Numbered from the whole stretch's first letter, positions 21,127-29,034 are shown. The stretch is 63,710 bases of DNA, filler included, from Octopus bimaculoides (GCF_001194135.2; 6 parts of 5 records of this genome joined end to end with filler, not necessarily neighbours in it), one strand, 5' to 3'. Translations and numbers: made by a program. Notes: generated by a model from the sequence alone, not told the origin.

Positions 21127-21186
21127 TCAAGATTTCTGGACAGTCAACACATTAAACTCGGTTCCTTCAGAGTTGGACTTTATTGG
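21127..21186 (-). CDS. Myristoylated acidic CBM48 protein, coding exon 5 (last)
   Basis: Acceptor tgtgttttccag; PIKSNSEGTEFNVLTVQKS*; aligns with AMPK-beta PIVTSQLGTVNNIIQVKK; phase 0 fits exon 4. Confidence 0.85.
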   Translation of the reverse strand, partial: PIKSNSEGTEFNVLTVQKS

Positions 21187-21394
21187 CTGGAAAACACAGA
21201 CAACAGACAAGTTACTGTAGAGTTTCATGCAAGACACTTGCTTTCAAACAATGACAAAAAAACAACAACAATGTCAATCGTTGGATTGGCAGGTGAAATA
21301 AGAGCACAAAGTAGTGGTGGGCAGCAGAAATCATGTGACTATGCACCATTGTTGAAATAACAGGATTGAAAGAATATTTGCACAGTGTGATCGT

Positions 21395-21736
21395 CACCAA
21401 CGTCACCTTCCTGGCACTTGTGCCAGTAGTACTTGAAAAGACATTCGAGCGAGATCGTTGCCAGTGCCACTGGACTGGCTCCTGTGCAGGTGGCATGTAA
21501 AATACACCATTTGAGCATGGCCGTTGCAAGTACTGCCTGACTGGCCTTCGTGCCGGTGACACGTAAAAGCACCCACTACACTCTTTGAGTGGTTGGTGTT
21601 AGGAAAGACATTCAGCTGTAGAAATTCTGCCCGATCAGATTGGAGCCTGGTGTAGCCATCTGGTTCACCAGTCCTCAGTCAAATCGTCCAACCCATGCTA
21701 GCATGGAAAGCAGACGTTAAACGATGATGATGATGA
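21395..21736 (+). mobile_element. RTE-associated SINE (intronic)
   Basis: ggcacgtaaaagcacccactacactc...gcatggaaagcagacgttaaacgatgatgatg. Confidence 0.8.
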
Positions 21737-21829
21737 CACACATAAACATGTGAATTTAATGCATAGCTAGGTGTTCACCAAGGCTCAGTCCTCAGCCCCC
21801 TCCAATTCATTCTTGTCATACAGGCCGTA

Positions 21830-22790
21830 ATAGAGGAATATAAGACTGGAAGTACATGGGAACTACTGTTCTCATGACAGAATCTTTAACAGAACAAGAA
21901 AAGAAATTCCAGTTGTGGAAGCAAAACTTGGAGTCAAAGGGCCTTAAGGTTAACTTTGCAAAGACCAAAGTCCCAGTAAGCAAGAAATCAAACAGAACCC
22001 TACCCCTTTTTCGAACAGGACCCATAACCCCTGTTCAATATGTAGAAAGGGCGAAGGTAGAAATTCCATTTGGTGTACCAAATGAAAGCTATGGATACAC
22101 AAGAAGGCAGTGTTTGCATGTGGACGATGTACAGGAACCATAAAGACTACAGATACATGGGAAACTGATTTCCTCAAATGCCTCAGAGGCTTTCTGGTGG
22201 ATAATAATTACTGCTGACCTAGTTAGGTGACCTAAATTAGCAGTGGAGGAGGATGTTCCAAAAGTGTAATTGCTAGAATAAGAATAGGATGGAGAAAATT
22301 CAGAGAAATTTTACTTCTATTGGCAATCAAAGGTCTCTCTCTCTCTCTCTCTCTGAGTAAGAGGAAGATTGTACAATGCATAGACACAAACAGCAATTCT
22401 ACATAGTAGTGAGACGTTAGCCTTGAATGAAGATGATATGCAAAGACTAGAGAGGAATGAAGCTAGTGCCATCCTTCATTAGATGTGAAATGTCAGTATA
22501 CAAGTGAGACAGAGTGTGCTAGTCTACATAGAGAAAAGTTGGGCATAAGAGGAATTAGAAGCAGTGAACATGAGAGAAGACTGTACTGGTTTGGTCATGT
22601 GATGTGAATGGATGAGGACAGTTGCATAAAGAAGTGGCAATCTCTTAAAGTGGAAGGAAGTTCTGGAAGCAGGAGACCCAGGAAGACATGGGACAAAGTA
22701 TTGAAGGCCAATCTCAAAATGCTGAGCCTTACAAAAGGAGATGATAATGGGCTGAGATATCTAATGTTTTGCTATACTGAAGAAGATTTG
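21830..22790 (+). mobile_element. RTE-clade LINE RT/C-terminal fragment (intronic)
   Basis: KFQLWKQNLESKGLKVNFAKTK; MDEDSCIKKW...RRPRKTWDKV; degenerate. Confidence 0.8.
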
Positions 22791-23064
22791 CCCACCACAT
22801 CAGAATTGTTATCCGAAAAACCACCTTGGTAATGTTTGTCAATGAGGTTTTTTGTTCCATTAATCTTCTTCCACACCTGCATTTCATATCCTAACAACCA
22901 TCACTTCCCCTATCCCCTGAAAGCAGAACAGGTATATATTACATCCCCTGGCTTTCTCATAACTACTGCAACCCCTGCTTCCAAATAATTTTAAATCTTA
23001 TTAATTAATTTTCTGAAGGTCTGGAATTGAAACAGCTGTAAGAGATGTAGTCAATTTTTTTCAG

Positions 23065-23447
23065 AGCAGCTAACTGGCTTCCGTGCCAGTGGCACGTAAA
23101 TAGCACCACTTGAGCATGATCGTTACCGGCGTTGCCTTACTGGCACGTGAAAAAAACATTCGAGTGAGATCATTGCCAGTGCCGCCGGACTGGCTCCTGT
23201 GCAGGTGGCACGTAAAATACACCATTTGAGCGTGGCCGTTGCCAGTACTGCGTGACTGGCCCTTGTGCCGGTGGCACGTAAAAGCACCCACTACACTCTT
23301 GGAGTGGTTGGCGTTAGGAAGGGCATCCAGCTGTAGAAACTCTGCCAGATCAGATTGGAGCCTGGTGCAGCCATCTGGTTCACCAGTCCTCAGTCAAATC
23401 GTCCAACCCATGCTAGCATGGAAGGCGTACGTTAAACACTGATGATG
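23065..23447 (+). mobile_element. RTE-associated SINE (intronic)
   Basis: Same family; ggaagggcatccagctgtagaaac and gatgatg tail. Confidence 0.85.
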
Positions 23448-23480
23448 AATAAACTATTGTCTCTCTATTTTCTTATCTTA

Positions 23481-23521
<41 letters not shown>

Positions 23522-23594
23522 CCCCGTGTCTATAAACATCTAATTATCTGTATATGTCTACATGAAAGGGAAAGTGCTTGTGCATACAACATAC

Positions 23595-23688
23595 CTGGTT
23601 CGCGTTGATCTTCCATTCATCATCAACAAGGAAGCGATATAAATATTCACCAACATCAAGGTCAAGGTTCAGCATGAAAGCCTCTTCA
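23595..23688 (-). CDS. Myristoylated acidic CBM48 protein, coding exon 4
   Basis: tttattgcag|T GAA GAG...AAC CAG|gtatgt; 94 nt; EEAFMLNLDLDVGEYLYRFLVDDEWKINANQ aligns with AMPK-beta FVAILDLPEGEHQYKFFVDGQW. Confidence 0.92.
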
Positions 23689-26673: not shown

Positions 26674-26674
26674 G

Positions 26675-26722
<48 letters not shown>

Positions 26723-27035
26723 AACATATGGTATAATTATAAACAGAGCAAATTTTAGCCATTTCTTTGCAGACTGAAAGAAATGATGAACAACCTTAAG
26801 CAATTTTCAAACCTTATTGGGTTCTCATCAGAGGCATCTACATCATTCTCAGTCTCCAGAGAAACAAGTAGCCAAACTGTTTATATACTCAACAAATGCA
26901 ACACTTACTCTATGAAGGAGTCCCTAATTTGCATACCGAAAGAAAACTTAATTTACTCCCTGTTCTTTACTTCTAATTCACCAATATAAAAGTCATCAGT
27001 GTCAAAATTCCAACAACTGCAACCAAAACACATAC

Positions 27036-27977
27036 CTCAGTTGATGGTTCTTCAGTTTCAGGCACTTCTGCTACCTTTTCCTCTTCAGTTGTCTTAGTAA
27101 CTGCTTCCACTGTGTCTAGTTCTTCATTAACCTTACTTTCATCGCCTCCAACTATTCCTCCTTCTTCGTGGCATTCTGATTCGCCAGTCACTTCTGAATC
27201 TGTAGCATTGCTCGGCTCAAGCTCTGGTTCTGGCTCCGAAACAGGAATGGGAGCTGATTCTGGAACTGTTTCTATGAGAGTAGCTGTCACAGGTTCTGGG
27301 AGTTTTTCCAGAGGTGGTTCTGGAAATGAATCTTGTTCTGGGATTGGGTCTGGGAGTGATTCTGGTTCCGGAAGTGATTCTGGCTCTGGGAGTGATTCTG
27401 GTTCCGGAAGTGATTCTGGCTCTGGGAGTGATTCTGGCTCTGGGAGTGATTCTGGTTCAGGGATGGGTTCTGGGAGTGATGCTGGCTCTGGGACAGATTC
27501 TGTTTCAGGAACAGATTCTGGTTTCGGGATAGATTCCTGTGCTGGAGCTGGAGTTGGTTCTGGAACTAATTCTTGCACTGGTTCTGGGACAGGTTCTGGA
27601 ACTATCTCTGGTACAGATTCTACAACCACTTCAGACACTGCTGCTGCTGCTGCTGCTGGTGTCGATTCTGTCACAGTTTCTACAGCAGCAACGACCTCGT
27701 CTATCTTTTCAGATGCTTTCTCCACCTCTTTACTCTCAGTTTCACACTTGACCGATTCCTTAACCTGTGCTGCCACAGCATCCACTTCATTCATAATTGT
27801 TTCTGTAAAAGAAGATGGTTCGGCGCTACCATTTTCCGATGCTTGTGACTCAGAAACAGCTGATTCTTGTGCTTTCTGGGAATCTTCTGTAGGTTTGGTA
27901 CTTTCTTTGGCTTCTTCTGCCACTTCGTTTGTTGTGACATCTTCGACAGTTTTCTCTGTGGCATTTTGCGGAGTTTC
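27036..27977 (-). CDS. Myristoylated acidic CBM48 protein, coding exon 2 (314-aa Glu/Pro/Ser-rich region)
   Basis: tttttcag|GAA ACT CCG...ACT GAG|gtatgt; 942 nt, phase 0/0, inside ORF 26973-28100. Confidence 0.92.
27352..27459 (-). repeat. Coding 18-bp tandem repeat x6 (PEPESL)
   Basis: ggRagtgattctggYtcH units read directly from the sequence. Confidence 0.9.
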
Positions 27978-28156
27978 CTGAAAAATCAAAGACAGCAACG
28001 CAATCAACAGAAAAGCAGCAACAACAACAACAACATCATAAATTATTACAAAAAAAAAATGTAAAAGAAAATCCAAACACAACATCTTCCATTTTGCCAA
28101 AGATTTTGGATCAAGACGAATCAGGACAATTGTTGCTTCTGCAAAAGTAGGACGAT

Positions 28157-28300
28157 GAGGTTAGAAAGCATGATTCCCACCGACGTGGTTTCAAGTTCAG
28201 CCCCACTACAGGTCACGTGGGACAAGTGTTTCTGCTATAGCCCCAGACTAACCAAAACCTTGTGAATGGATCTGATAGATGGAACTGAGGGTTGCCTGTT
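28157..28300 (+). mobile_element. Old CORE-type SINE 5' half
   Basis: ggttagaaagcatgattccc...ggacaagtgtttctgctatagcc. Confidence 0.65.
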
Positions 28301-28319
28301 GTATCATCATCACTATCAC

Positions 28320-28760
28320 CATCATCATCATCGATTAACGTCTGTTTTCCATGCTGGCATGGGTTGGATGGTTTGACTGGAGACTGGCAAGCCAGGAGGC
28401 TGCACCAGGCTCCAATCTGATCTGGCAAAGTTTCTACGGTTGGATGCCCTTCCTAATGCCAACCACTCTGAAAGTGTAGTGGGTGCTTTTTACATGCCAC
28501 CAGCATGGGGGCCAGTCAGATGGCACTAGCTTCGACCATGCTCAAATGGTGATTTTTAGGTGCCACCAGCGCAGGAGACAGTCAGACGGCACTAGCATCG
28601 ACCATGCTCGAATGGTGCTTTTTATGCACCACTGACATTGGCCATGCTCGAATGGTGCTTTTTACATGCCGTTGACATTGGCCACAACAATGATTTCACT
28701 TGACTCAACAGGTCTTTTCAAGCACAGCATTTTGCCCGACGAATGAAGGGTACTCTTAAA
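28320..28760 (-). mobile_element. RTE-associated SINE (intron 1)
   Basis: catcatc tail + ttaacgtctgttttccatgctggc...ggatgcccttcctaatgccaacc. Confidence 0.8.
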
Positions 28761-28953
28761 CGGGATGGTTGGTACATTTATGCATCTGTGTATGTGTATG
28801 TATTTATGACTGTGATGGCACCTGTGCCCAGCGTCGCCTTCCTGGCATTTGTAAAGACATTCGAGTGAGAATGGATACAGGGTTTACCTTGATGTGAGTC
28901 TATGCAATGTACCTGCTTAATGTATGTATAATGTGAATATATAAAGAACATAC

Positions 28954-29034
28954 CTTGTCCTCTACTGTTTCTGCGACTCCTTCATTTTCCTTGGCGCTGT
29001 CTTTCCGCTTTGCTTTGCTAGTTTTTCCTCCCAT
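28954..29034 (-). CDS. Myristoylated acidic CBM48 protein, coding exon 1 (start)
   Basis: ttattttcag|TGAGG ATG GGA GGA AAA ACT AGC AAA...GAC AAG|gtatgt; MGGKTSKAKRKDSAKENEGVAETVEDK; G2/S6/K7 myristoylation consensus. Five exons total 1287 nt in one frame (428 aa + stop). Confidence 0.85.

Follow-up and report, generated by a model that had tools for sequence, protein, structure and literature searches.

In several described systems a glucan-binding module is joined to a module that binds a membrane or a partner. Yeast Atg45 (Yil024c) combines a PF16561 domain, an Atg8-interacting motif (AIM) and a membrane-binding region, and is a glycophagy receptor attaching glycogen to membranes; Crp1, a stand-alone PF16561 protein of yeast with the paralogue Mdg1, is found at the cell periphery, where it co-localises with glycogen synthase (PMC11145338). 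In vertebrates, Stbd1 is N-myristoylated, has a CBM20 at its C-terminus and binds glycogen (PMC12138165), and molluscan STBD1 has an N-terminal CBM20 and no hydrophobic membrane anchor (PMC12913940, where CBM48 proteins are not mentioned). Here we describe a gene on the minus strand of a 63,710-nt stretch of Octopus bimaculoides DNA (GCF_001194135.2; the window, to whose full length all coordinates refer), the product of which carries a predicted N-myristoylation signal, a long acidic spacer and, at its very end, a carbohydrate-binding module (CBM) of the AMPK beta type (CBM48). Sequence comparison places it as the cephalopod member of a conserved molluscan family with a stand-alone C-terminal CBM48, a family that follows the known logic of pairing a glucan-binding module with one for a membrane or a partner, with parts that are combined and ordered differently. 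Molluscs store their energy predominantly as glycogen, and the positioning of glycogen particles in cells is poorly understood beyond yeast and mammals.

Comparison with known systems

The AMPK beta subunits (PRKAB1/2; yeast Gal83, Sip1 and Sip2) share with the mollusc family a Met-Gly myristoylation signal and a PF16561 CBM48 that aligns without gaps and has the same fold. Unlike them, the mollusc proteins have no C-terminal ASC/AMPKBI domain (PF04739), hence no alpha/gamma scaffold, and end right after the CBM. They also have a polybasic patch after the myristoylation site and 230-350 acidic disordered residues, versus approximately 70 in AMPK beta, and Ser108 and Leu146 of AMPK beta are not conserved in them.

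Atg45, Crp1 and Mdg1 resemble the family in having an AMPK-beta-type CBM48 without an ASC domain, and Atg45 in addition unites glycogen binding with direct membrane binding, so that a stand-alone AMPK-beta-type CBM protein with membrane binding already has a characterised precedent. Yet the order of parts in Atg45 is reversed (N-terminal CBM, AIM of sequence YVNL, C-terminal amphipathic membrane-binding region), and this protein of 189 aa has neither acidic spacer nor lipid anchor, whereas no AIM-like motif precedes the CBM in the mollusc family; orthology between the yeast proteins and the mollusc family is not implied. Vertebrate Stbd1 is N-myristoylated and membrane-targeted, with a middle that is disordered and a glycogen-binding module at the C-terminus (PMC12138165, PMC12913940), an overall logic like the one that the first-pass annotation had proposed for the octopus protein. 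STBD1 (genethonin-1), however, uses a CBM20, bears an Atg8-interacting motif as well as a hydrophobic segment at its N-terminus, and belongs to an unrelated lineage; a Pfam search of the octopus protein found PF16561 only and no CBM20. In BASP1 (CAP-23/NAP-22), of the GAP-43/MARCKS class, Lys-rich residues come after Gly2 and precede a long, acidic, disordered chain rich in Pro, Glu and Ala; the protein is myristoylated (PMC3758512), but has no folded domain or CBM. The plant adaptor PTST1/FLO6 (PROTEIN TARGETING TO STARCH; PMC4339375) is non-catalytic and, similarly, brings a partner to alpha-glucan through a C-terminal CBM48; it differs in the coiled coil that binds GBSS, in its plastidial location, in having no lipid anchor or acidic spacer, and in the subgroup to which its CBM48 belongs.

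A five-exon gene

The three minus-strand frames of 20800-29400 were translated, and the junction contexts located and joined. This gave five exons with canonical AG...GT borders, which form 1287 nt of coding sequence (428 aa) in one open frame closed by a single terminal stop, TGA, at 21129-21127 (Table 1). The first-pass annotation of the window had proposed five GT-AG exons and a product of this length, and every one of them was recovered where it had been placed; its remark that the list of open reading frames (ORFs) misses the architecture is also borne out, as the list holds only exon 2 with intronic read-through (26973-28100). Three GT candidates exist for the exon-3 donor, and the frame is open only from 24985. 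Since the CBM is split across three exons and is recovered only by splicing, chance is excluded, and the five-exon gene, known here from genomic sequence, is real. The acceptor just before the ATG implies an untranslated 5' exon farther upstream, and the GTGAGGATGGGAGGAAAA context before the start is also found in L002, a transcript contig described below.

Upstream of the start codon, at a distance of about 1.7 kb, lies an assembly gap of 280 N (30768-31047), in or beyond which a 5' untranslated region (UTR) exon or promoter could lie. The plus-strand ORF 27112-27981 (289 aa, Gly/Ser/Asp-rich) opposite acidic exon 2 is a mirror artefact of the repeat and no gene.

Table 1. Positions of the gene, of residues equivalent to AMPK beta sugar contacts and to Ser108, and of surrounding features.
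Feature	Position	Strand	Description
Coding exon 1	28954..29034	-	aa 1-27, MGGKTSKAKRKDSAKENEGVAETVEDK; donor AAG/gtatgt, phase 0
Splice acceptor ttttcAG	29035..29041	-	5 nt upstream of ATG; context ttttcagtgagg, then ATG
Coding exon 2	27036..27977	-	aa 28-341; tttcag/GAA ... GAG/gtatgt; phase 0 at both ends; Glu/Pro/Ser/Val-rich polyanionic low-complexity spacer
18-nt tandem repeat in exon 2	27345..27502	-	about 9 copies; encodes (PEPESL)n
Coding exon 3	24985..25094	-	110 nt; aa 342-378; ttgtag/GTC ... AAGAT/gtaggt; ends in phase 2; first CBM48 strands, VEIRWDEEAENVLLAGSFNNF
Coding exon 4	23595..23688	-	aa 378-409; ttgcag/TGA ... CAG/gtatgt; central CBM48 strands including R396 and W403
Coding exon 5	21127..21186	-	aa 410-428 and TGA; ttccag/CCA ... 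TCT TGA; last CBM48 strands, PIKSNSEGTEFNVLTVQKS, then stop
Downstream flank to piece edge	14603..21126	-	microsatellites and repeats, without AMPKBI/ASC coding potential
W99/100 equivalent	F369		gastropods: W in all
S108 equivalent	I378		Ser not conserved in any family member
K126 equivalent	R396		gastropods: K or R
W133 equivalent	W403		W invariant across the family
L146 equivalent	E416		gastropods: D/E/N/S, never L
T148 equivalent	T418		gastropods: variable
N150 equivalent	F420		gastropods: mostly N
Segments of the probable Lottia gene-model error	12905-12958 and 14787-14858 of L001 (KB200846.1)		
SINE-like element, about 300 nt, five copies	21436-21733, 23151-23448, 24042-24223, 24623-24856; inverted copy 28314-28621	+ (first four)	introns 1, 3 and 4

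Head, spacer and C-terminal CBM48

The product as a whole contains 21.5% Glu and 11.4% Pro. Its first 11 residues, MGGKTSKAKRK, display a myristoylation consensus followed by a basic patch: at the level of the motif, Gly2, the small uncharged residue at position 3, Ser6 and Lys7 (M-G-G-K-T-S-K) are all in place, and the N-terminus is thus predicted to be N-myristoylated. The acidic low-complexity middle, which like this head had been noticed earlier, spans approximately 335 residues (about 12-347; 26% Asp+Glu, 14% Pro). The region before the CBM carries a net charge of -72 and contains two Phe, but not a single Trp or Tyr.

PF16561 (AMPK1_CBM, CBM48) is the sole Pfam family found in the protein (aa 348-427, E = 3e-21, 75.9 bits against a cut-off of 26.8). 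The match covers profile positions 2-81 of 85 and the protein ends one residue later, in line with the earlier description of an end-to-end AMPK-beta glycogen-binding domain followed directly by a stop. The best matches in the PDB are the CBMs of AMPK beta-2 and beta-1, the human beta-2 CBM (2f15) aligning over 80 residues without a gap (E = 4e-13). The structure was modelled for a family member, the CBM of the gastropod Biomphalaria, rather than for the octopus domain: the AlphaFold model, built with a ten-sequence alignment, has a predicted local distance difference test score (pLDDT) of 89, and superposes on the AMPK beta-2 CBM 4yee with a target-normalised template modelling (TM) score of 0.95 and a root-mean-square deviation of 0.9 A.

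The octopus CBM was mapped on beta-2 numbering (residue = query position + 66; Table 1). In AMPK beta-1, glycogen binding is lost with the substitutions W100G and K126Q and weakened with W133L (PMC6274970). Taken together with the residues listed in Table 1, these mutants suggest that carbohydrate binding is likely for the gastropod CBMs and uncertain for that of octopus.

Absence of the ASC domain

No Pfam match at E <= 1, and hence no AMPKBI/ASC signal, was found when the three minus-strand frames were searched over the 6.5 kb that follow the stop, up to the edge of the piece (14603-21126). When the last 120 residues of three genuine AMPK beta proteins (P0132, P0141, P0152) were used as ASC queries in tblastn against both strands of the piece, the genomic locus of the limpet orthologue described below (Lottia) and the transcript contigs, the best E value was 1.0; as a positive control, the CBM parts of P0141 and P0152 recovered exons 3 and 4. 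Exon 5 has no convincing donor before the TGA. The Biomphalaria locus has no ASC within 10 kb downstream, and none was found in the transcript contigs L004, L023 and L002, 3' UTRs included. The ASC domain having been looked for and found absent, the octopus protein is not a canonical AMPK beta subunit, a conclusion that the observations support. The first-pass annotation had already held that it is no AMPK subunit, and the stop after the CBM, the Pfam and tblastn results and the equivalent ends of the orthologues agree with this; as for transcripts that splice on into an ASC domain, none occur among the contigs of relatives, an answer that comes from these relatives and not from octopus itself.

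A conserved molluscan family

A word-indexed search with the whole octopus protein returned mainly low-complexity matches, together with an orthologue from the limpet Lottia gigantea (LOTGIDRAFT_238680, P0001). This protein of 400 aa has PF16561 as its only domain, starts with MGNKLSGPKKDKDDKKK and continues with a PEPE-rich acidic middle and a CBM near its end. In the genomic locus the last CBM exon reads PIHCGEDGTENNVIVVS and then TAA (frame ...NNVIVVS, stop). The annotated model, however, leaves this exon at AAT/gtaatt for an exon 1.8 kb away, which adds 24 unrelated residues (HYFCSHYWIEIALCKILQMKPMIL). Since the genomic read-through agrees with all other members, the annotated C-terminus is probably a gene-model error.

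The Lottia CBM, used as query in an exhaustive HMMER search across 1.84 billion representatives, gave 1932 matches at E <= 0.001. Among these are single-domain proteins with 46-55% identity, all with the CBM at the extreme C-terminus: P0082 from Biomphalaria glabrata (XP_013067142, named 'cell surface glycoprotein 1-like'), P0094 from Lymnaea stagnalis (CAL1536256.1), P0115 from Bradybaena similaris, P0101 from RNA-seq of the snail Bithynia siamensis goniomphalos (SRR1046838; PMC3967946), P0064 from SRR22671420, and P0068 from Plakobranchus ocellatus, a 136-aa fragment without the N-terminus. Apart from this fragment, these proteins are 310-405 aa long, start with MG[GNA]KS.KQK and have acidic middles. 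The N-terminal MG[GNA]K.S.K with its Lys/Arg cluster is conserved in every member that has an N-terminus, including MGGKSSKQKSKK, MGNKLSGPKKDK and the octopus protein, and the charge layout is shared across the family: the first 20 residues carry +2 to +6, the spacer -28 to -81. Between the last CBM strand and the stop every member has 1-4 residues, and the signature VD[DE].W..N[KA]..P.K is present in octopus as well. The architecture, for which a search across molluscs had been suggested, is thus conserved and not unique to octopus.

In alignment A1, the octopus CBM is 38-46% identical to those of the gastropod members, with 14 invariant columns, while identity to canonical AMPK beta CBMs amounts to 30-38% for octopus and 40-48% for the gastropods. 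A neighbour-joining tree (no bootstrap) sets the family CBMs, octopus included, apart from AMPK beta (41-71% identity within the family versus 30-48% to AMPK beta). At the nucleotide level, the three introns of the CBM region occupy identical positions and phases in octopus and Lottia (0 before the CBM, 2 within it at an Ile/Gln codon, and 0 before PI[KH]), and the exon boundaries that tblastn delineates in Biomphalaria match the same three positions. Two short assembled contigs, L004 and L023 (the latter from Bithynia RNA-seq), contain complete, uninterrupted ORFs running from the Met-Gly start through the CBM to the stop, with in-frame stops upstream of the start.

The closest relative found is represented by two marine (Tara) metatranscriptome contigs, L002 (JGI 3300019054) and L003 (ERR1712121). 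They start with MGGKSSKQKRKES, continue with a PEPE/VVE-rich acidic body and end with GEYLYRFLVDVWRINLNEPIKMNDDGEEFNVLIVQKA before the stop. This end is 66% identical to the C-terminal half of the octopus protein, L002 terminating at the equivalent place (NVLIVQKA, stop), and both contigs run contiguously over the position of the octopus exon 4/5 junction. L002 has in-frame ATGs upstream of its Met-Gly start.

UniRef automatically names family proteins 'AMPK subunit beta-1', a label that would distort any inventory of AMPK subunits. No paper was found on the five Lottia and Biomphalaria accessions searched, nor any description, in animals, of such a combination of membrane head and CBM48. The expectation that the family had not been characterised therefore holds as far as these accessions go, but predicted orthologues were already present in databases under automatic names, which the first-pass annotation had overlooked. 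Besides the wrong C-terminus in Lottia, the gene models of the family probably include a wrong insert in Lymnaea: residues ~265-320 of P0094, just before the CBM, form a basic, non-acidic stretch (LLQHAGKSRPSEGHGLEKNKNTSKLAKTLNSARALFPLLSSKRNIDQ) that is absent from the close Biomphalaria orthologue and probably corresponds to retained intron sequence.

Further searches gave no additional members. With the family profile, the word-indexed search returned only a bacterial branching-enzyme fragment and a 50-aa fragment (P0163), and a scan of metagenomes only bacterial or canonical CBM48 loci. The bulk of the top HMMER matches are proteins of ~480 aa with four tandem CBM48-like domains (P0011-P0063 and others), which we take to be bacterial; one of them, P0012, has an N-terminal hydrophobic, signal-like stretch. 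A protein of 1812 aa from Epulopiscium viviparus with 18 matched stretches is also among the top CBM48 matches, and the tandem-CBM48 proteins score nearer to the animal AMPK-beta-type CBM than expected. Two fish proteins, P0003 (Trematomus bernacchii) and P0005 (Notothenia coriiceps), were rejected as homologues: they have no CBM, and their likeness is limited to Pro/Glu repeats and hence compositional. They are ~310 aa long, start with the myristoylation-type MGNRFSR, contain PEPEALPEPEP repeats, and are automatically named 'MamJ-like' and 'TsetseEP-like'.

A putative membrane-glycogen tether and its alternatives

The explanation we favour, to which we give slightly better than even credence, is that of a stand-alone three-module protein, independent of AMPK, through which glycogen or a partner associated with it is linked to membranes. 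Such a family would most likely have arisen from an AMPK-beta gene by loss of the alpha/gamma-binding ASC domain. BASP1 and Src are held at membranes by myristoyl-electrostatic anchors, and the first module, consisting of Met-Gly, Ser6 and the Lys/Arg cluster, is predicted to act as an anchor of this kind, by N-myristoylation and binding to acidic membrane leaflets. The second module, a disordered, strongly negative and nearly aromatic-free spacer of 230-350 residues, would be repelled by the membrane and keep the C-terminus at a distance. The third, the AMPK-beta-type CBM48 that closes the protein, would then connect particles of alpha-glucan (glycogen), or a partner associated with glycogen, to the cytoplasmic membrane face, outside the AMPK heterotrimer. 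Myristoylation, membrane binding, glycogen binding and a tethering role are all predictions here, and the analogy with yeast Atg45 and with N-myristoylated STBD1 makes the tether function plausible. The AMPK-beta glycogen-binding module would have left the kinase complex in an animal lineage and been combined anew with a lipid anchor, in parallel to Atg45, Crp1 and Mdg1, and, if tethering proves true, the family would offer a simple, testable membrane-glycogen link in animals whose STBD1 has no anchor.

A bolder scenario, which we put forward only tentatively, is that molluscs, and perhaps lophotrochozoans more widely, possess a dedicated and reversible membrane glycogen tether in which a polyanionic spacer joins a BASP1-like myristoyl-electrostatic switch to a CBM48 derived from AMPK beta. 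Such a protein would keep glycogen particles at membranes, would provide the anchor that molluscan STBD1 lacks, and would be controlled by phosphorylation or calmodulin at the basic head, not by Atg8.

Several observations speak against the tether explanation or the gene model behind it. The sugar contacts of the octopus CBM are only partly kept (W100F, K126R, L146E, N150F), L146 and S108 being lost family-wide. No Atg8-interacting motif of the form [WFY]xx[LIV] occurs before the CBM in octopus or in six other family members, the sole match in the family falling inside the probably mis-annotated insert of Lymnaea. A word-indexed protein search with the octopus CBM gave no match, with zero cephalopod proteins sharing words in a collection of 5.8 billion proteins. 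The interval between the acceptor and the ATG has no in-frame stop, so that an upstream exon could in principle extend the frame past the Met-Gly start. At the other end, no AATAAA occurs within 1.1 kb of the stop and the only variant, ATTAAA, lies 1.1 kb downstream, which leaves the 3' end of the transcript undefined. Finally, the first half of the CBM is degenerate in L002 and L003, with the two halves in different frames (approximately nt 950-1150 of L002), and the domain may therefore be dispensable in some lineage or isoform. The frame offset is compatible with loss of a stretch measuring 2 modulo 3 nucleotides (octopus exon 3 has 110 nt), and the contigs could represent either an exon-skipped isoform that yields a CBM-less protein or a lineage that is losing the domain.

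Some of these points could also be read as signs of a BASP1/MARCKS-like protein of the membrane cortex, in which the head and tail would be functional (through lipid rafts, phosphatidylinositol 4,5-bisphosphate (PIP2) or the cytoskeleton), the CBM48 being a protein-protein module or degenerating in cephalopods, and the ligand would not be glycogen. We regard this as rather unlikely. MGGKTSKAKRK ahead of a long acidic Pro/Glu/Ala-rich disordered chain does match the arrangement of BASP1, a myristoylated protein (PMC3758512); F stands at the W100 and N150 positions of the octopus CBM, and L002 and L003 encode head and tail with a disrupted CBM. Yet the CBM is the best-conserved part of the family, gapless against AMPK beta and with an invariant W133, and both platform tryptophans are kept in gastropods; L002 retains the second half of the CBM and the stop, which favours an isoform over decay, and the likeness to BASP1 is only compositional. 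It is more improbable still that the protein regulates AMPK or glycogen-bound enzymes as a decoy, its free CBM competing for sites on glycogen or docking on the alpha kinase lobe and so bringing AMPK signalling to membranes. In sequence and fold the CBM is closest to those of AMPK beta, and the AMPK beta CBM does contact the kinase N-lobe at the ADaM site, but Ser108, an autophosphorylation site the phosphorylation of which stabilises this interface, is Ile378 here and unconserved in all members, and a protein without the ASC domain has no known stable link to alpha or gamma.

The remaining alternatives question the gene itself. An untranscribed or decaying duplicate that has retained its open frame by chance would agree with the absence of any protein from the locus or from a close relative in the searched collection, and with sugar-site substitutions specific to the octopus lineage. 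We consider it very improbable, since the five exons are intact, with canonical splice sites, conserved intron positions and phases and neither frameshift nor premature stop, the Pfam score is 75.9 bits, and the octopus-type variant EFNV...VQK[SA] followed by the stop is also found in the expressed relative L002. Least probable of all is that the locus shows just a part of a canonical AMPK beta gene, with ASC exons past the edge of the piece (below 14603) joined through an alternative last exon, an idea to which the kilobase introns of this genome, the 6.5 kb of downstream sequence and the lack of a clear poly(A) signal after the stop lend themselves. An in-frame TGA follows right after the CBM in an exon without a good donor before it; Lottia, Biomphalaria, L004, L023 and L002 stop at the equivalent place, with no ASC in contigs or 3' UTRs or within 10 kb; and the acidic insert of 335 residues and a CBM identity of ~35% are unlike canonical beta subunits.

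Repeats and other features around the gene

Copies of the short interspersed element (SINE)-like sequence are 85-93% alike and contain internal 66-nt sub-repeats (...GGCACGTAAAAGCACCCACTACACTCT...); their opposite orientations across exons could give rise to long intronic hairpins in the pre-mRNA. Intron 2 harbours an inverted repeat (25607-25685 / 25824-25902; 79 nt, 91% complementary, 138 nt apart, flanked by (ATT)n) that looks like a miniature inverted-repeat transposable element or another hairpin-forming element. The same intron contains a tRNA-Thr(GGT)-like sequence on the plus strand (26438-26515; called by ARAGORN, and scoring 32.9 bits with the Rfam tRNA model against a gathering score of 29). 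It is flanked by 102-nt direct repeats that are 87% identical (26277-26378 / 26578-26679); candidate identities are a tRNA gene, a retroposon of tRNA origin and a segment of a local duplication.

Three ORFs around and inside the gene are taken as retrotransposon remnants. One, at 33001-33288 on the plus strand, is a reverse-transcriptase fragment (RVT_1, E = 5.7e-6, 26.6 bits, below the cut-off of 29.6); the others, 17701-17976 (minus) and 21856-22143 (plus), have no Pfam match and are taken as remnants resembling the tails of long interspersed elements. Lastly, a GC-rich kilobase (16603-17602; GC 0.55 versus ~0.38 around it), which overlaps a plus-strand ORF of 184 aa without Pfam match (16551-17105), could be a CpG-island-like region or a repeat.

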